64,000 bases of DNA from contig RQSC01000029.1 in the NCBI GenBank assembly GCA_013416795.1, positions 450,250 through 514,249 of the forward strand. The letters run 5' to 3'. Position 1 is the first letter of the stretch. The number at the start of each line of letters is the position of its first letter. The notes beneath the pieces were generated by a model. That model was given only the letters and a program-made list of their open reading frames with translations, searched no databases and was not told the DNA's origin. A program made the translations under genes and the position numbers. The DNA is from Prasinococcaceae sp. CCMP 1430. Lineage: Eukaryota; Plantae; Prasinodermophyta. This document shows positions 5,923-38,886 of this stretch, piece after piece.

Positions 5923-6407
5923 CGCCTCGCCCGGAGACCTCCCCGCCGGGAAAGGAAGGAGGGTGGGTGGGTGGGTGAGTGGGCGGGAAGGGCGTCGGCT
6001 GTGGCACACGCGTCACACGCGCACGCGCAGACGTACACACGCACGCACACGCACACACACGCACACACGCACACACACTAAACACACACACTAAACACAC
6101 ACACGCACGCACGCACGCACGCAGGCGCGCAGCATACGCATGCGCATTACAGTAAGTCAATCGAAGAAGCCTCTTACTCTATGTACATGTACATGCACGT
6201 GTTTTCGCGCCTTGATGGACCCTAACCCCAATATTCGCATTTGTGCTGCAAACGGCGCATCTTTGCTGCATTCGACGACCCCACCCCAAACCGTCGCGCC
6301 CCTCCGCGCGGGCACGCCAAAAAAAAAAAAAAAAAGGCGGCCGCGGCCGCGCCGGCCGCGAAGGCCGAGCGGACTTGGAAAAAAAAAACCGCAGCTGCGC
6401 GAATCTG

Positions 6408-6560
6408 TCTTCCATCCGCGTGCGGGTCAGGTCAAACGACGCCATGAAAAAGCCCTCCGTCCGTCCTTCGTCGTACAGCGTGCGCATCTTCCATCCGCGT
6501 GCGTGCGGGTAAAAAAAAGTAAAAAGCGCTCCGGACAAGCGTGCGAATCTTGGATCCGCA
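6408..6560. promoter_or_regulatory. Direct repeats in the A-tract-rich PGDH/AGPase divergent intergenic region
   Basis: TCTTCCATCCGCGTGCG is exact at 6408-6424 and 6487-6503; a degenerate third copy lies at about 6543-6560. Confidence 0.4.
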
Positions 6561-7334
6561 GGCCGGTAAAAAGTTAAAAAAAAAAAACTTAAGAATCGGC
6601 GCGGGGTTCAGAGCTGAGCCAGATATGGATTCGGGCTGATATTTTCTCGCGCCGACCGAAAAATCAAAAAAATCGGCGCGCGCGCGCGAGCGGCGCGGCG
6701 CCCGAGCGCATCGCCCACGGGAGAGCACCCTGATGGCGGGTCGTCCCATCGGATCGCACAGAAGGCCGCCGCGCGGCCGCGCGCGCGAGGGCGGGGGCCG
6801 CGGCCGCGATCGGATAAAGACGAGCTCGAAAAAAAAAAAAGAGTTCCCGTCAGACGCGGCGTTCGGTCAGATGCACCCCTCCGCACCGCACCCAACACGC
6901 GCGCCAAAAAAAAAAAAGGAAAAAAAGTTCTCAGAGGCGCACAGACTTCAGAAAAAGCATTGGTGCGCACCATTCGCGCGCACGACACGTCAAACAAAAA
7001 GGCGGCACCGACCGACCAACAAAAAAAAATAAAAACGGACATCTGCGCGTTACCCCAACGGATTGGATGGAGATTCGCGCCGTCCTCCCACGCGCCTGAG
7101 AATCTCGAACCCCGATAAAAATCGGCCTTTGTGGCGGTTGCGGGATCGGATTCGGTGCGCGCTTTTTGGGAGGACGTCGCCCGCGTGGCGGCGGGCGCCG
7201 CGGCGGTGGGCTTCGGGGCCGCGGCGGCGCCGAGGGGGGGCGCGGGCGCGGGCGCGGAGGAGACGAGGGAGGCGGNNNNNNNNNNNNNNNNNNNNNNNNN
7301 NNNNNNNNNNNNNNNNNNNNNNNNNNNNNNNNNN

Positions 7335-8928
7335 GCGCGCGGCGCGCGGGGCCGCGCGGGGCGGCGACCTTCGAGGCCGTGGAGGCGGCGTGCGACGGCG
7401 ACGAGGCGTGCCTCGAGGCCGCACTGCTGCAGCTCGAGGAGCTTGGGCAGCTCGAGGAACCGGCGCCGGCTGCGCAGTCGATCGACACGCGCACGGTGGT
7501 CGGGGTGGTGCTCGGCGGGGGTGCGGGCACGCGCCTCTATCCGCTCACGCGGCAGCGCGCGAAGCCCGCGGTGCCCGTGGGCGGCTCGTACAGGCTGATC
7601 GACGTGCCGCTTTCCAACTGCCTCAACAGCGGCATCGGCCGCGTGTACGTCCTGACGCAGTTCAACTCGGCCTCTCTCAACCGCCACGTGAGCCGCACGT
7701 ACGGCGGCGAGTTCGCCAGCTTCGGCTCGGAAGGCTTCGTGGAGGTGCTCGCCGCCACCATGACCGCGGCCGAGAACTCGGGCGGCGACTGGTTCCGGGG
7801 CACGGCTGACGCCGTGCGCCAGTACCTGTGGCTCTTCTCAGACCCCAAGAACAAGGGGTGCGAGGACGTCATGATCCTGTCCGGCGATCACCTCTACAGG
7901 ATGGACTACACGCAGTTCATCGCCGCGCATCGCCAGAAGGGCGCCGACGTCACGGTCGCGTGTCTGCCCGTGGACAAGTCGCGCGCCTCGGACTTCGGGC
8001 TGATGAGGATCGACGACGAGGGCCGCGTGTGCGAGTTCGCTGAGAAGCCCAAAGGGGACGCGCTCGCCGCTATGGAGGTGGACACCACCGTGCTGGGCCT
8101 CTCTCGCGAGGAGGCCGAGCGCACTCCGTACATCGCGAGCATGGGCATCTACGTGTTCCGCAAGTCGGTGCTCATCGATCTGCTGGCGGAGAGCTTGCCG
8201 TGCGCGATGGACTTCGGTTCGGAGGTCATCCCCCAGGCGAAGGATGGATACCACATACAGGCGTTCCTTTTTACGGGATACTGGGAGGACATCGGAACCA
8301 TGCGCAGCTTCTACGACGCCAACCTGGCGTTGACCGACAGCCCGCCCGACTTCGCCTTCTACGATGCCGCGGCTCCCATCTACACGTCGCCGCGCTTTCT
8401 GCCGCCGAGCAACATCTTCAACTCCGAGGTGTGCGACTCAATCGTGTCCCACGGCAGCGACCTGAACAGCTGCCGCGTGAGGCACTCGTTGGTGGGCCTC
8501 CGTTCGCGCATTGCCGAGGGCGCGCTGCTGCAGGACACGCTCATGATGGGCGCGGATTACTACGAGACGGAGGCGGAGCAAGCGGCACTGCACATGGCCG
8601 GACAAATTCCAATGGGCATCGGTGCGTGCGCGAGCGCTCGCCCCTGCGCGTCCGAGCAGCGACGAGCGCCTCCTGACCCTAATGCCGTGCGCGCGCGCGC
8701 GCACGCGCGCACGCGCACGCCCTGCGTCACCACCGCTGCGCTGCAGGGGCAAACACTGTCGTCAAAGGCTGCATCATCGATAAGAACGCGCGCATCGGGG
8801 CAAATTGCCGCATAACCAACGCGCAGGGCATCGTGGAGGCGCGGCGCGAGGAGCACGGATACTGCATCCGTGACGGCATTCTTACGGTGCTCAGGAACGG
8901 TACTATCGCCGACAACACCATCATATAG
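7335..8928 (+). CDS. APL: ADP-glucose pyrophosphorylase large subunit; intron 8622-8746; start at or before the 7276-7334 gap
   Basis: Motifs [49 protein letters not shown] and [17 protein letters not shown]. The spliced last exon reads [18 protein letters not shown]...DNTII*. Confidence 0.92.
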
Positions 8929-9573
8929 CTAGAGCTCGCTGGTCAGAGTGGGCGGTGGTTCTACCCGGCTCGCCATGTACACTAACTACACGATCTTGTT
9001 GCCTAACGCCCCCACCTGGCACCGCGGTGCCCACGCGTGCGAGCGCGTCTCGCTCTCGCGTGCGCACACGCCGCTCGCCAGCCTGCGCGCCCGTTCGGCA
9101 CGTGAGGCGCCCCTTTCCGTCCAATGTGCCGCCCACTGCTGGGTTGGCCGCCATGATGTCGCGTGTGGCACAGTCGCCACGAAGGTGGCATGCGTAGATT
9201 GCTTCCAGGTGCGCTCGCTTGGCGCCTGCGCGTGCCGCGGGAGAAAGGGAGACAGGCAGGAAAGGAAGGGGGGGGGGGGGGGAAGGTCACCCTGCAGGCG
9301 AATTGACGGCTCCCTTTTTTTTCGCGCCAAAAGACAGGGCCGAAGACGGCCCCATTCCCCCGTATCAATTCGCATGGGTTCCGACGGTGCCGGAGGAATT
9401 CCGCGCGCCGCGCGCGCGCAGTGAGGGGAGCGGCGGGAGAGCGCTGCGCGCCGGCGGCGGCGTGGCTGCTGCCACACGTGGGGCGTGGGGGCGCCCTGGG
9501 CGCAGCAGGGCACTCGGCAGCGCACAGCGTGGACAGAGGAGGGGGGAGCGGGGAGGGGGGGAACCGACAGGTG

Positions 9574-11131: not shown

Positions 11132-11235
11132 NCTCGGAGGCGGGTGCGACCCCTCGCCGCGTTCGCGAGCGCGCGCGCCCGGCCGCGCCGCTCTCCCGGG
11201 GGGGGCGGGGGCGGCGCGCACCTCCAGGGCGCACC

Positions 11236-12844: not shown

Positions 12845-14629
12845 TCAGCAGACAGCGTTAGGGCCGCTGAGCACCGCTGACTCGCCGCCGTGCCCAACCT
12901 CAAGGACGACGGGACCGCTGTCCAGCCGCTGCAACCAGGGCTCGCCGTCGATCTGCATGGCCATCGCACGGTCCAACGGGCCGCGCGCGCCGCCTGCGTG
13001 CGGCAGCACCTCCAAGCGCACCTCCGACACCTGCGCGAGGCGCGTGGCGCCCGAGAGATGGGTCATGACGCCAGCGAGGTGGGCGCCGCCGCGGAGCGCG
13101 ACAACCTCTACCAAACCGTCTGCCATCGACATGTGGTCGCTGCAGTTGATCGGGGCATCACCGTGTCAGCGCGAGCGGGTCGGCGCAGTGAGCGCTACAT
13201 CGAGGAACGCAGACACGCTTGAGAACAGACGCGATCGCGCGAACGCGAGCGCACTCACCTGCACCCAGGAGGGCTGCCGCTCCCCTCTCCATGGGCAGCG
13301 CCACCAGCGCTCCAACCCCACCGCTGCCTCCACAAGTCACGCCCGCCGGCAAATGAGTTGACGTTGAGAATGACTACGCCAGTCGTGCCCTCAGGGAGTC
13401 TGATGTAGCGCCAAGAATTGGGGTCGCGCTCACATTCGTCGTCTGGAGTGCCCGCATCCCTGCCACCACGCACCCGCAGCACGACCCTGCCGCAGAGGCT
13501 CGCCTTTTGGCCGCAGCAGCCGCGCGTCAGGCCGCACGCCCAGCCCTGCCAAAACGCGGTGAGCACGTAGAGGAGCTTGTTGCTCATCCGTCGCCGCGAG
13601 CCTAGCTTGGAGCGCACAGACGCGCGGCGGCTTTGGTGGAAACCGTAAGCAATCTGCGCGTCCATGCCTGCGCCGCGCGTGCGCGGGCGCGGCCGGCGCC
13701 GCATGCAAGAAGCGCGCCGGGCGTCAGCGGGCGCACGGACGGGCAGACGCATGGGCGCGCGCGGGGCGGTGTGGGGATCGGGGAGCTCGCGCGCGCGCGC
13801 ACCGATGGACAGGTAGTTGAAGAACCTGCCGGTGGCTTCAGGCGCGTTGTGTTCGCACGAAAACGCGGGGGGAAGTCCGCCGCCCGCCAGCGCCGCGGCA
13901 GCCGCTCCCGCCCCCGGTCCGCCTGCTTTGAGACGCAGCGAGACCCGCCACCGGTCTAGGCGCACGATGGGCGCGCATGCGATTGCGTGCAGACGCGCGA
14001 GCAGCCTCTGCTTCAGCGGCGCGCGGCTAATAAGACCGCCGAAGCCGAGCCAGCCGGTGGCTCGTGCCATGTCATTGCCCGTCCCAAGCGGCAGGATGGC
14101 GACGGGCGTAATGGAGGGGTCCAAGCCGGCGTCGGCGAGCGCACCGAGCACCCAAGCAGCACTTCCGTCGCCTCCGGCCACGACGACCCGCACGCCGCGC
14201 CCACTGCGCCCAGCAGCCGACAGTCAGTGTCGCACACCAGCATTATTGCACTCACGCGCGCGCGCGCTCGCCCGTGCGACGTGCGTCGTACCTGCTTGCC
14301 ACTGCCACGAGCTCGGCTATGCGCGCCCCCGGTTCGGTCTCGTTCTGCAGGTCGAACACCTGCTTCGGCCCCAGCAGGTCGGCGAGCGCTGCGTGCACGC
14401 TCCTGCCGAGCAGCTCTCCGGACTGGCAGTTGACGAGCGCGACGCACGGCACGCGGCGCGCCGCGAGCGGCGAGTCGACCGGCGGCGCGCGCAGGTCGCC
14501 CACGTCCAGTGCTTGAAGCGAGCGCGAGGACAGGCGCAACGCATCGGCGCCTCCCAGCGATTTGCGCGCGGCAAGCGCGGACCCCCTGCCCGCGTCGCCA
14601 TGCCGGCCACCAGCCGCCAGCAGGCCCGC
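12845..14629 (-). CDS. DGK: Diacylglycerol kinase; introns 14204-14291, 13668-13802 and 13140-13258; native ATG apparently displaced to 16836-16838 by the mitochondrial insertion
   Basis: Motifs VALVNCQSG, RVVVAGGDGS, LPLGTGND, FFNYLSIG|MDAQIAYGFH, ADGLVEVV and MQIDGEPW. All three GT-AG introns preserve the frame. Confidence 0.85.
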
Positions 14630-14630
14630 C

Positions 14631-14861
14631 CTCTCAACCATGGACTCGGTGAAATTGAAGTCCCCGTGAAGATGCGGGGTACTCACGGTAAGGCGAGAAG
14701 ACCCCGTGGACCTTTACTCAAGCCCTGCATTGAGTGTCGGGACCTGTGTGCGCAGACTAGGTAGGAGCGGTATCCATAGGTTGCGGCCTAGAGGACACGC
14801 ATCAGTGAGAGACTACCCACACACACCGGCGCTCTCACCCTGTGGACAGTGCATGGTGGAG

Positions 14862-14901
<40 letters not shown>

Positions 14902-15123
14902 TGTATGCAAGGTAGGCTCACCCCGGACGGCAACCGGGCGAGTGGGGAGAATGCCCTATGCCTGCTTGACTGTAAGATGGGCACATCGAGCAGAGACGAA
15001 AGTCGATCATACTGAACCGGAGTTTCCTTGTGGAAGGGGCTTCGCTCAACGGATCAAAGGTACCCCGGGGATAACAGGCTTATACTTCCCGAGAGCTCGA
15101 ATCGACGGAAGTGTTTGGCACCT
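14631..15123 (+). rRNA. rnl: Mitochondrial large-subunit rRNA fragment (domain V, about E. coli 23S 1985-2500), within the NUMT
   Basis: Conserved tracts GACTCGGTGAAATTG, AAGACCCCGTG, TTTGACTGGGGCGGT, GGGGATAACAGGC and TTTGGCACCT. Confidence 0.92.
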
Positions 15124-15330
15124 CACACATCGGGGCAAAGAAGAAACCTTCTTTGATGAAGGCAGAATGCGGGAACCTTCAGAACGAACAATCCGCAGGA
15201 AAGAGTGGTCTTTCCTCAACGACTCAACGCCTTCCTTTCTTTGAAGTGGGGTGACCCACACACAAAGAGAGAAGAGAGAGTCTTTCTTTTCTTGAAAAAG
15301 AAAAACGGTCGTCGACCCAAAGACGAACGC
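15124..15330 (+). ncRNA. Group I intron core at rnl position 2500, lacking the 3' splice site and exon
   Basis: Begins after U2500. Elements: P10 guide ACATCG (15127-32, complementary to the expected exon CGATGT), P3 GAAGGC/GCCTTC, P AATGCGGGAA (15166), Q AATCCGCAG (15190), R CTCAACGACTC (15215), S AAGAGAGAGTC (15272), and P8, P9 and P9.1 hairpins. Confidence 0.85.
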
Positions 15331-15343
15331 ACACAGAAAAAAC

Positions 15344-15391
15344 ATCCTTTCAAAAAAAAGACTTTTTTCCCTGTCTTTTCCTTTGAAGGAT
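15344..15391. terminator. Stem-loop between the convergent rnl/intron and cob units
   Basis: ATCCTTTCAAA pairs imperfectly with TTTGAAGGAT; an inner AAAAGAC/GTCTTTT stem is present. Confidence 0.3.
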
Positions 15392-15422
15392 AAATAAAAA
15401 ATATATCTACTACCTTTCTTTT

Positions 15423-16580
15423 TCATTGAACCTTCCATCGAAGAAGGAGGTTTTCAAGGCGTCCAAGGACCGGGGTCAGCACAAGGAAGTAGAAAAAGAA
15501 GTAAAAGGTCAAAATTTGACCGATTTCAAGGTAGGGGGACTCGACAGGCATCGCACCAATCCATCCAAGAAGAAGGGCGGTGGCCACAAAGGACCAGTAC
15601 GCCATTGCTGCCAATGGTCGGAAGGCGTTTGATCGAACAGATGCTGTATGAAGCCAAGGCATGAGTCCGAGGCAGACAAAGGTTGCAATCATTGCCACAA
15701 CCCCAAGAAGTTTGTCTGGAATAGACCGAAGAACAGCGTAAAAAGGAAGGACGTAGAACTCTGGAACAATGTGTGCAGGGGTACTCAAAGGGTTTGCTGG
15801 AATGTAGTTATCCGCATGCCCCAAATAGTTGGGTGCATAATGGACAAAGCAAGAGAAAATAATTGCAAAGACCAACCAGGCCACAAGGTCTTTCACATAG
15901 AAAAGAGGGTACAAAGGATGCTTGTCTGTGTGTGAGGGAACTCCCACAGGGTTGTTTGACCCATACTGGTGAAGGGCTGCAATGTGAAGGATAGAAAGTC
16001 CAGCAATCACAAAGGGAAGAAGGTAGTGAAGGCTAAAGAATCGGTTCAAGGTTGCGTTATCCACGGAAAACCCTCCCCACAGCCAGACAACAACGTCATT
16101 TCCTACAATTGGAATAACGGATGCAAGGCTGGTAATCACCGTTGCTCCCCACAGAGACATCTGCCCCCAAGGCAAGACATACCCAATAAAGGCTGTCAAA
16201 ATCATCAAAAGAAGGAGGACAACCCCAAGAACCCACACGAGTTCTCGTGGACTTGTGTAAGACCCATAATAGAGTCCTCGAAGAATATGAATATAGACGA
16301 CGATGAAAAACATTCCGGCTCCATTTGCGTGAAGATACCGGAGGAACCACCCTCCTTCAACATCTCGCATAATATGCTCAACGCTCGAAAAGGCAAGGTC
16401 CACGTGGGGAGTATAATGCATTGCAAGGAAGATTCCACTTGCAATTTGGATCCCAAGGCAGATTCCTGCAAGAGATCCGAATCCCCACATATAGGTCAAA
16501 TTCGAAGGGGTCGGGTAATCACTCACGTGATCATTCACCACACTCAAGACTGGTTGAGTGATCAAGGCTGATCGACGCAT
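15423..16580 (-). CDS. cob: Apocytochrome b (385 aa, standard code), intact within the NUMT; ORF extends 57 codons upstream to ATG 16751
   Basis: Motifs [37 protein letters not shown] and SLHYLLP; all four heme His residues are present; no frameshift or internal stop. Confidence 0.97.
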
Positions 16581-17041
16581 GAAAGGAGTCGGTCGGTGGT
16601 TTTCAGTCATCGGTCCGAAGGCTCCTTTTCCAAAGGCTTCTGTGTCTTGGATGGGTGCATCCCACAAAGGGGCCATTGAAAGGGGTGCGGTAGACGCAGG
16701 AAGAAGGGTTGTTTTGTTCCGTGTTCCTGAAAGTTTCACAAAGGTTGACATAAATCATGAAAAGAATGGAAAGATCATCCCAAGAGATCTCTTTTTTTCT
16801 TCTTTTTTTGAAAGATAGAGAGACTTTTTTTTTTCCATCGCGCGCCCGCTGCCGCCCGCCGCAGCGCCCGCCGCACGCCGCTACGTGCCAGGCGCACGCC
16901 CCGCACCCCTTGTGCCACCTGTGGGCGCCCGAGCTGCAGCCCTCCCCCCACCCCACCCCACCCCATCTCAAGCACGCCGCACCAGGCAGCGCACACGGTG
17001 CACACGATTTGCACTTTTCGGAATTTCCCGCCGTTTACCCG

Positions 17042-17061
17042 AACCCTAACCTAACCCTAAA
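17042..17061. promoter_or_regulatory. Telo-box-like interstitial telomere motif
   Basis: AACCCTAACCTAACCCTAAA lies upstream of PrmA. Confidence 0.5.
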
Positions 17062-17095
17062 GGGCGCTGTGTCAAACCTTAACCTTTGTGGAGCG

Positions 17096-18107
17096 ATGAG
17101 GCCGCGACGTGCAGCTGAGCCCTGCCACGGGGGGGAAGGAGGGGAGGGGGAGGGGGGGGAGGGTCACTCTGCTCTGCGGCGTCGGCGTCCGCCCGCGCGG
17201 CCGGCGGGGCCGGCGAGGGCGACGAGGGCGACGGGGACGCCGTCCTCGGGCAGGACGAAGGCATCGGGGGCGATGGGTCGACCCCTGTGATCGACGCGCA
17301 GGCGCAATGGCTGAGCGCCTTCTGCGGGTCGGAGGAGGAGGACTGGGTGGCCGCCATCAAGAGGGCGAGCTATGTGCCGACTGAGGCTGCGCCCGGGGTG
17401 TGGCTCGTGCCCGATTGGAGCGATGGGGCCGTGCCAGACGAGCAGCAGTCGGCCTCATTTGAGCCGCCTACGGGTGCAGTCAAGGTGGCGCTGCAGCCAG
17501 GGGTGGCGTTCGGCACTGGCGAGCACCCGACGACGCGCCTCTGCCTCGGGGCGTTGGCGCCGGGCGGCCGCGCTGCCGTGCGACCCGGCGATGAGGTGTT
17601 GGACTATGGCGCGGGCAGCGGGGTGCTGGCGCTCTTGGCGTTGAAACTCGGCGCGGCGCGCGCGGTCGGGGTCGATAGTGACGCCTCGGCGGTGTCCTCC
17701 GCCGAGACCAACGCTGCGCTCAATGGGTATGACGAGACGAGCTTCCGCTGCTATGAGGTGGACCCGGAGGACGACGCGGCTCGGCCACTCGCGGCCGAGG
17801 TTGACGAGACCTTTGACGTGGTCGTGGCCAACATTTTGCAGGTACGTGCGCGCATAGTCGGTGGCGGCTGGTAGGCATGCGCCCAAGTACTGACCATCGA
17901 ACGCCTCCCTCGGCACAGGGACCGCTGATTGAATTGGAACCGAGGCTGGCGCGCGCGTCGCGGCCCGGGGCGCGATTGGTGCTCAGCGGCGTGCTGGCGG
18001 GCGAGCAAGCGACGGCCGCGGTGGCAAAGTACGGTGAGCATTTCGAGGACTTGCGCGTCGCAGAGGAAGATGGATGGGCGTGCGTGACCGGTGTGCGAAA
18101 GCGATAG
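17096..18107 (+). CDS. prmA: Ribosomal protein L11 methyltransferase; intron 17842-17918; 5' end uncertain
   Basis: Motifs AFGTGEHPTTRLCL, VLDYGAGSGVLA, DVVVANIL|GPL and LVLSGVL. Confidence 0.85.
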
Positions 18108-26117: not shown

Positions 26118-26432
26118 NNNNNNNNNNNNNNNNNNNNNNNNNNNNNNNNNNNNNNNNNNNNNNNNNNNNNNNNNNNNNNNNNNNNNNNNNNNNNNNNNNN
26201 NNNNNNNNNNNNNNNNNNNNNNNNNNNNNNNNNNNNNNNNNNNNNNNNNNNNNNNNNNNNNCGCGGATGGGCGCGCGCCGCGCCCGCGCGCGGCCGCCGC
26301 GCGCGCGCCCGAAACCCTACCGGATCCCTACCGAATCGCGATCGCGATGGCAATCGGCCGGCCGGCCGGTGCTCTCGCACCCATCCATCGCATGCCGTCG
26401 ACGTGAAAGAAGGGAGCGGTCCTCCCACCCAC

Positions 26433-38185: not shown

Positions 38186-38886
38186 CTATGCGCAGCCGGG
38201 CGCGTGGCCGGGCGCGCCAGGCCAGGCGCCCGGCTTCGGGTTGGCGCCGCTGCGACGTGCGCGGCGCGTGTGGGCGCACGCGCGCAGCGGGCGGGGGGGG
38301 GGGGGGGGGGGGGGGGNNNNNNNNNNNNNNNNNNNNNNNNNNNNNGGGGGGCGCTTCACCGCGGCGGAGCTCGTCGGCCGGCGGTGGACCTCCTCTCTTC
38401 CGCCTGTGGCGTTCGCATTCGCTCTCCCGCTCTCTGGCTGCCTGGCCTCGCTCGATCCGTTGGGGCGCAGGCGGGCGCGCGCGGGCGCCGGCCGCGGGCG
38501 CGCGCACACGCCAGGAAATGGATGGAGATTTTCGCGCCGGGCTGCGCCGCACGCCGCCCGTCCGTCCCACCGCACATCGGGGATCAGATCGAGCGCTACA
38601 CCCTCGCCTGCTTCCATTTTCTGCTTTCAATTCAAAGGGTCGTTTTCTTTCTGTCCTTCAAAAACAGGGCAAAGAGGCGGCGGCGCAGCGCCGCGCGGCC
38701 GGCGGCCGGCGGCGTGCGGCGGCGGCGGCGGCGGCGGTGCGGTGTGCGCGGTGTGACGACGCCACAGTCGCGCCAGCTCGCGCTGCTGCCGACCCCCCCC
38801 CGACGTTCAAGGTGCGAGATGGGAGAGGAGGAGCTGGGGGTGTCGTGCGGGGGGCGCGGGCGTGGACATCTGCGCGGCCGCCCACG

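Follow-up and report, generated by a model that had tools for sequence, protein, structure and literature searches.

The closest described counterparts of the insertion analysed here are the lineage-specific nuclear insertions of mitochondrial DNA (NUMTs) that arose by end joining in primates (Hazkani-Covo and Covo 2008, PMC2567098). These are single collinear fragments without target-site duplication, joined through short microhomology, and relatives possess an empty orthologous site. Microhomology together with a small target deletion lies inside their end-joining spectrum, and 54% of the events show no deletion (PMC2567098). In humans, recent polymorphic NUMTs are known that lie in a gene, occur in some individuals only and are expected to cause loss of function (Hazkani-Covo et al. 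2010, PMC2820518; Wei et al. 2022, PMC9630118). In draft assemblies, organelle/nuclear chimeras likewise bring organelle sequence of near-100% identity into a scaffolded nuclear assembly. [quoted passage not shown] 2013, PMC3873408), including the trans-spliced group I intron Pr.rnl.2, whose insertion site follows E. coli 23S position 2500. No paper mentioning NUMTs in Prasinoderma was found.

In the window, i.e. the whole stretch of 64,000 nucleotides that was analysed, a block of mitochondrial DNA of about 2.2 kb interrupts a gene for a diacylglycerol kinase (DGK) of this Prasinoderma-like green alga. It has in common with the primate NUMTs a single collinear fragment, the lack of a target-site duplication, short microhomology and an empty site in relatives. 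It differs from them by the loss of 50 bp of the target and by its host, a GC-rich picoplanktonic alga of the green lineage; it is also still polymorphic and shows essentially no decay. Like the human gene-disrupting cases it is recent, lies in a gene and is restricted to some individuals, but it strikes the start codon region itself, and its effect on the gene is predicted from sequence. The insertion is probably a textbook young NUMT and not a new kind of element.

Mitochondrial DNA within the DGK locus

The bases of exclusively mitochondrial origin, the NUMT proper, extend over 2,199 bp (14636..16834, minus strand) and give a near-ungapped collinear match to natural mitochondrial contigs. 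Over 25 natural mitochondrial contigs of Prasinoderma are collinear with the block, and 17 natural contigs align with it from end to end. The nearest donor haplotypes are the wild contigs L043 (2 differences in 1,962 bases) and L045 (2 in 1,858), each covering about 1.9 kb of the block; identity to living mitochondrial haplotypes amounts to about 99.9%. GC content is 36–55% inside the insert and about 70% outside. Both flanks belong to one nuclear locus: the DGK/PrmA intergenic region adjoins the insert at one end, DGK exons 1–4 at the other. Judged by these alignments, the block is mitochondrial DNA within a nuclear locus, collinear with the alga's mitochondrial genome. Other low-GC spots of the window were considered as organellar DNA and rejected, positions 1001–2000 being an N gap and 6001–7000 a CA-rich simple repeat.

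Genes in the insert follow the order of natural Prasinoderma mtDNA (rps12, rnl c, cob, intron half, rnl b, rns, rnl a), in agreement with the published P. coloniale genome, to which it also corresponds in the intron half after 23S position 2500 and in the long cob ORF (PMC3873408). On the minus strand, the insert begins with the spacer upstream of cob (16752..16834), which separates rnl c and cob in real mtDNA. The cob ORF follows (15423..16751, minus strand), recognized both as an ORF and by sequence comparison; it is intact, with 442 codons plus a stop, and its conserved core starts at the ATG at 16580. The N-terminal extension of 57 residues ahead of this core is native to Prasinoderma mtDNA, and nine wild mitochondrial contigs encode an exact copy of the protein. 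The published cob protein of P. coloniale CCMP1220, in contrast, is only 95% identical to the copy in the insert; the donor haplotype instead resembles L043 and L045. On the plus strand lie the 5' piece of Pr.rnl.2 (15124..15304; Rfam Intron_gpI match at 15071–15304, with the LSU alignment stopping at GGCACCU) and a truncated rnl b exon of the mitochondrial LSU rRNA (14632..15123), which corresponds to about E. coli 2030–2500 (Rfam LSU_rRNA_bacteria, 339 bits). This rnl b piece also occurs in the mitochondrial contig L022 at 7595–8090.

The empty allele and the junctions

An empty allele in other individuals, which the sequence-only reading had proposed to look for, is present in 12 wild metagenome contigs (L027–L038), and P0157, the DGK protein annotated in P. 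coloniale, represents it as well. The ATG at 16836..16838 (minus strand) is the native DGK start codon, as that reading had supposed: the same ATG opens the reference protein P0157 as well as the 145-aa ORFs on all 12 empty-allele contigs. On the minus strand of the window, the upstream flank GCGCG-ATGG terminates at 16835, one base past this ATG, and GGCGGGCCTG reads from 14630 downward. These flanks stand as they had been read around 14629–16838; the limits first given to the insertion, 14631–16834, were slightly off, and comparison with the mitochondrial contigs and the empty alleles sets them at 16834..14636.

The structure of the empty allele is ATGG + 50 bp + GAGAGG. In 12 of 12 cases, 50 extra bases stand between ATGG and GAGAGGGCGGGCC (264–313 in L027), and homology to the window breaks at exactly 16835 and 14635. 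The 50 bp, sought across the window, are absent from all of it. They comprise the last two bases of DGK codon 2 and codons 3–18, and their GC content is about 92%. As far as these alleles tell, the event is an insertion combined with a 50-bp deletion. The initial picture of a clean empty site with a 2-bp (GG) duplication thus gives way to a coding deletion with microhomology of 2 and 4 bp, and the empty site then reconstructed, ATG GCG GGC CTG CTG, does not exist, since all 12 empty alleles carry the 50 further bases; that the reconstructed junction was in frame is a coincidence. Simple excision, giving ATG GGG GCG GGC, is likewise in frame yet wrong, because the real empty alleles are 50 bases longer.

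The microhomologies were read from a three-way comparison of the window, the empty alleles and the mitochondrial contigs. At the upstream junction, GG (16835..16836, minus strand) is common to nuclear ATGG and mitochondrial ...CCCAGG|AAAA; at the downstream junction, GAGA (14632..14635, minus strand) is common to mitochondrial ...GGTTGAGA|C and nuclear ...TCG|GAGAGG. According to our own calculation with equal base frequencies, microhomology of at least 4 bp would arise by chance at one junction with a probability of roughly 1–2%. Taken together, GG and GAGA, the 50-bp target deletion and the lack of long homology fit the pattern of end-joined NUMTs.

From 16839 upstream, the flank aligns collinearly with the corresponding parts of the empty alleles (89–100%). 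The nuclear flank of the window differs from L030 at 5 positions in 2.49 kb, and the empty alleles differ among themselves at 1–26. Because the window's nuclear flank nests within this wild empty-allele diversity, the insertion is the derived state.

DGK in the filled allele

The gene encodes a plant-type, C1-less diacylglycerol kinase with the Pfam domains DAGK_cat and DAGK_acc. Spliced mapping of P0157 places residues 19–500 at 12845..14635 on the minus strand (exons 14635–14292, 14203–13803, 13667–13259 and 13139–12845); this part is intact and 100% identical to the reference protein. Its real introns measure 88–135 nt, with the donors GTACGA, GTGCGC or GTGAGT. On the other side of the insert, collinearity with the empty alleles delimits the DGK/PrmA intergenic region (16839..17286), presumably a shared promoter together with the DGK 5' leader; a PrmA-like ORF begins at 17287 on the plus strand.

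It had been proposed that the insertion merely separates DGK from its promoter, but the gene is also deprived of its start codon and of 17 codons. When translated from the native ATG, the filled allele yields a 27-codon dead-end ORF with the stop TGA at 16757–16755. Transcripts from the native promoter would now be translated into this dead-end peptide, and the DGK allele is predicted to be null or strongly weakened. The remaining DGK product, if any, would start at an in-frame ATG that the insert itself carries in antisense rnl sequence (tccATGg, 14639..14641, minus strand), with M-V followed by DGK residues 19–500 as the predicted protein; this would require transcription to be initiated anew within the insert.

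Age and origin of the insertion

Between the cob gene of the insert and the wild haplotypes, nearly all differences are at third positions, and only one or two substitutions of the insert are private to the window. None of the candidates for nuclear decay was retained: 15762 is synonymous, 14801 falls on a weakly conserved unpaired rRNA position, and 15342 is shared with L042, L043 and L045. On the evidence of these alignments, decay is nearly absent. Because cob is intact, differences are at third positions, private changes are few and DGK residues 19–500 equal the reference, the insertion appears to be very young; the earlier view that recent mitochondrial DNA lies here in nuclear DNA is supported by the collinear mitochondrial contigs and the scarcity of private changes.

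The sequences make it probable, in our judgement, that the insert is a very young, polymorphic NUMT that originated by end-joining capture of the alga's own mtDNA. According to this model, a chromosome break would have occurred just 3' of the DGK start codon, and during its repair by end joining a linear piece of the alga's own mtDNA, 2.2 kb long, would have been captured. One end of this piece lies in the spacer that precedes cob, the other halfway through the rnl b exon. The joins would have used the GG (2 bp) and GAGA (4 bp) microhomologies, with the target losing 50 bp. We infer that the event took place in vivo.

A competing explanation is an artefact of the library or the assembly, in which two template-switch or ligation chimeras linked the nuclear flanks with mitochondrial DNA, which is abundant, an assembler or gap closer threaded the 2.2 kb between them, and the cells would in fact carry the empty allele. 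The assembly is indeed scaffolded; its N gaps are odd-sized and variable, and one at least, at 11132, is collapsed; the missing 50 bp are extremely GC-rich; and microhomology is also used by template switching in vitro. In addition, the window's DGK protein otherwise equals the one annotated in the reference strain, where the allele is the empty one; if both assemblies derive from the same strain, they disagree at DGK. An artefact, however, needs two independent chimeras that lie 2.2 kb apart on one mitochondrial strand and return to a point 50 bp from the departure. The 2 and 4 bp of shared sequence are far too short for a graph or k-mer misjoin, the 60 bp immediately preceding the ATG are equally GC-rich and assembled normally, and 12 low-coverage Illumina metagenome contigs traverse the 50-bp block without difficulty. 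There is no N gap within 3 kb of either junction, the nearest being at 11132 and 26118. Unlike in draft-assembly chimeras, the two flanks are separated by 50 bp on each of 12 independent empty alleles, and neither join lies at a shared repeat or k-mer or beside a scaffold gap. Two further searches bear on the junctions. When JGI metagenome contigs were scanned for exact matches to the downstream junction, there were none; this is uninformative, because a nuclear-flank control gave none either and the collection thus lacks the locus. An exact look-up of two junction-spanning ORFs also returned none, which is equally uninformative, since the outcome depends on gene calling. On balance, we consider an artefact unlikely. 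The reverse polarity, with the filled allele ancestral and the empty alleles produced by deletion of the mitochondrial block, is a formal possibility only and hardly credible: 50 coding bases of the empty alleles are missing from the window, the block is nearly identical to living mitochondrial haplotypes, and the window's flank is nested in empty-allele diversity.

It could also be asked whether the insertion is functional or becoming so, either as a transfer of cob to the nucleus under the DGK promoter or as a new intron or new promoter for DGK. The intact cob shares its reading frame with the native DGK ATG, the insert offers the in-frame ATG at 14641, and splicing between a GT at 16824 and the AG at 14632–14631 would in principle restore the frame. 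Against this, the in-frame TGA at 16757–16755 stands between the nuclear ATG and cob, the 57-residue extension is native to mtDNA and not an acquired presequence, and youth alone predicts an intact cob. The ORF is thus not joined to a nuclear start, and no targeting sequence has been acquired. No eukaryote is known to have a functional nuclear copy of cytochrome b. After the native ATG, 39 others precede the one at 14641. An intron is improbable too, given the poor donor GTCTCT and a span of 2.2 kb, about 20 times that of the gene's real introns. A functional role is, in our view, very improbable.

A young end-joined NUMT at this locus also serves as a quality check on the assembly. It presents an insertion near its moment of origin, for which the donor haplotype, the allele before insertion and the two junctions are all directly readable, in a host that belongs to one of the earliest-branching green lineages. 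The host cell presumably holds one plastid and one mitochondrion. For such a cell, the limited-transfer-window idea (PMC3101015) predicts few transfers from organelle to nucleus. The DGK locus contributes to a concrete test of the sites at which a compact and very GC-rich genome takes up organelle DNA. The filled allele is a natural candidate knock-out of DGK. Tentatively, the insertion may be one of a set in which breaks at gene starts are repeatedly patched with fresh organelle DNA, although we regard this as rather doubtful; if true, the set would amount to a natural insertional mutagenesis aimed at start codons.

Mitochondrial origin and age of the block

At about 14.6-16.8 kb, the GC content of the window is 36-55%, compared with about 65-74% in the rest, the latter in agreement with the 69.8% of Prasinoderma coloniale (PMC11884799). 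On the minus strand, the nuclear sequence ...GCGCGATGG stops at 16835 and is followed by ten consecutive A, while ...CCATGGTTGAGAGGGCGGGCCTG spans 14632; these are the letters quoted in the sequence-only reading. The block contains an uninterrupted cytochrome b (cob) ORF of 442 codons on the minus strand (16751..15423), with the N- and C-terminal Pfam Cytochrome_B domains, and on the plus strand a bacterial-type LSU rRNA match (about positions 2030-2500; 339 bits) and a group I intron match (15071-15304). Among named cob proteins, those of P. coloniale and its relatives are the nearest.

In P. coloniale mtDNA, one strand carries rnl a, rns and rnl b, and the opposite strand carries rnl c, between cob and rps12 (Pombert et al., PMC3873408). 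Mitochondrial contigs from natural marine metagenomes show exactly this published arrangement: rps12, rnl c, cob, antisense intron half, rnl b, rns, rnl a. Hence, the rRNA piece and the half intron without a 3' exon represent the native mitochondrial order, and a mosaic origin of this odd-looking content is rejected. The block aligns in one piece to 17 mitochondrial contigs, from window 16831-16836 down to 14623, so that the segment is mitochondrial, as proposed earlier.

The exact cob protein of the window occurs on eight further contigs, all in mitochondrial context. The closest two, L043 and L045, each differ at 2 positions (15798, 15762) over 1,962 and 1,858 gapless bases, respectively; with cob intact, this upholds the earlier view of a recent insertion. 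Across all haplotypes, the sole window-private position is 15762, where the third base of a cob codon is changed without effect on the amino acid; an unpaired and weakly conserved position within the rRNA piece (14801) is perhaps private too, but lies outside the span of the closest contigs. Nearly all cob differences from wild haplotypes fall on third codon positions, and they read as variation among living mitochondria, not as decay in the nucleus. The nuclear copy would thus be of essentially zero age.

Marine metagenomes contain many close Prasinoderma mitochondrial haplotypes (L010-L026, L040-L047), 98-99.9% identical across these 2.2 kb, one class of which differs by an indel, about 50 bp long, downstream of cob. 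Prasinoderma mitochondrial cob also has an N-terminal extension of 57 residues (16581-16751; alignment A1), open in all haplotypes and fast-evolving next to a nearly invariant core; the published CCMP1220 protein (95% identity overall) deviates mostly within it. The extension is native to Prasinoderma mtDNA, and its interpretation as an acquired presequence is rejected.

Empty alleles and junctions

A search with exon 1 of the diacylglycerol kinase gene (DGK) retrieved a cluster comprising the annotated P. coloniale protein PRCOL_00002791 (P0157; 500 aa, DAGK_cat and DAGK_acc) and 145-aa ORFs of wild contigs, all with the N-terminus MGGAAAAPAGSP...SERAGLL. Alleles without the insert, sought in other individuals, are thus present in this protein and on 12 wild contigs (L027-L038). 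On all 12, the match to the upstream flank ends exactly at 16835 and restarts exactly at 14635, with 50 intervening bases (L027:264-313) that are absent from the window. These breakpoints establish ATG 16838-16836 as the true DGK start codon, with the upstream junction one base after it; P0157 and the wild ORFs match the start assigned earlier. The empty site reconstructed at that time was wrong, as it lacked the 50 bases. Relative to the empty alleles, the window has lost the final two bases of codon 2 together with codons 3-18. The nuclear flank differs from empty allele L030 at 5 of 2,490 bases, compared with 1-26 differences among the empty alleles themselves, which places the filled allele, as the derived state, inside ordinary species diversity.

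At the upstream end, the mtDNA sequence is ...CCCAGG/AAAAAAAAA, set against ATGG/GCGG... in the nuclear empty site; the corresponding sequences for the downstream end are ...GGTTGAGA/CAGCTGG and ...GTCG/GAGAGG. Both partners therefore have GG in common at the upstream join and GAGA at the downstream join; the GG proposed as a duplication or microhomology is shared sequence, and 50 bp of target were lost. By our own calculation, assuming equal base frequencies, microhomology of at least 4 bp arises by chance at about 1-2% of single random joins. End-joining capture of mtDNA at chromosome breaks is characterized by short microhomology, small target deletions and no duplication (PMC2567098). We propose that a mitochondrial fragment was captured in this way at a break in DGK.

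In one 708-bp metagenome contig (L039, 1.2x coverage), the part of DGK exon 1 that runs downward from window position 14399 is fused to 206 bp of unrelated 50% GC DNA (L039:1-206); the contig may be chimeric or come from a diverged lineage.

Consequences for DGK

Residues 19-500 are still encoded in four exons (introns of 88, 135 and 119 nt), with zero changes from the reference protein. The lost 18 N-terminal residues are of low complexity and variable among wild alleles; their MGG start is a possible myristoylation signal. The native ATG now opens a reading frame of 27 codons that terminates at TGA 16757-16755; two codons further on, and in frame with it, comes the ATG of cob. Given this in-frame stop between the nuclear ATG and cob, and the mitochondrial nature of the long N-terminal extension, functional transfer of cob is rejected. 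Between the native start and the remaining DGK lie 39 ATGs, which make read-through translation very unlikely. An in-frame ATG from the insert (14641-14639, tccATGg) would give M-V plus residues 19-500, presumably usable only if transcription started inside the insert. In the intergenic region shared with the PrmA-like ORF, a TTAGGG-type, telomere-like or telo-box-like run (17040-17075; L027:38-60) is kept in empty alleles and is thus native promoter sequence outside the insertion.

Insertion or assembly artefact

We consider a real in vivo insertion quite probable, and a library or assembly artefact unlikely. An artefact would be in keeping with the scaffolded, gap-closed assembly indicated by N gaps of irregular length (875-1372, 2254, 7276-7334, 11132, 26118-26261, 38317-38345). 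The 1-N gap at 11132, where the window has about 133 bp and L028 about 438 bp, is probably a collapsed gap closure. Furthermore, the empty allele is the one found in the reference annotation, from which the window's DGK does not otherwise differ, and our searches, whose blanks are uninformative, returned no second filled allele. However, the insert is one collinear fragment with two junctions, and on 12 independent empty alleles its flanking sequences are separated by 50 bp; sequence common to both partners at the joins is limited to 2 and 4 bp, and the window sequence has no N gap nearby. Moreover, assembly was normal in the 60 bp of equally high GC content that precede the ATG, and low-coverage Illumina metagenome assemblies readily crossed the 50-bp block. 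Elsewhere, two poly-C tracts enclose a GC-rich intergenic segment of about 270 bp (9279-9550) that is missing in L028 (5504-5514), a non-organellar indel polymorphism.

As far as sequence alone can tell, the insert behaves like nuclear insertions of mitochondrial DNA (NUMTs) introduced by end joining in each testable respect. It is a further case of this known phenomenon; our literature search found no published mention of NUMTs in Prasinoderma. Its main value is that of a cleanly documented fresh insertion, and it also provides a lead on whether organelle DNA repeatedly enters at gene starts in this genome.
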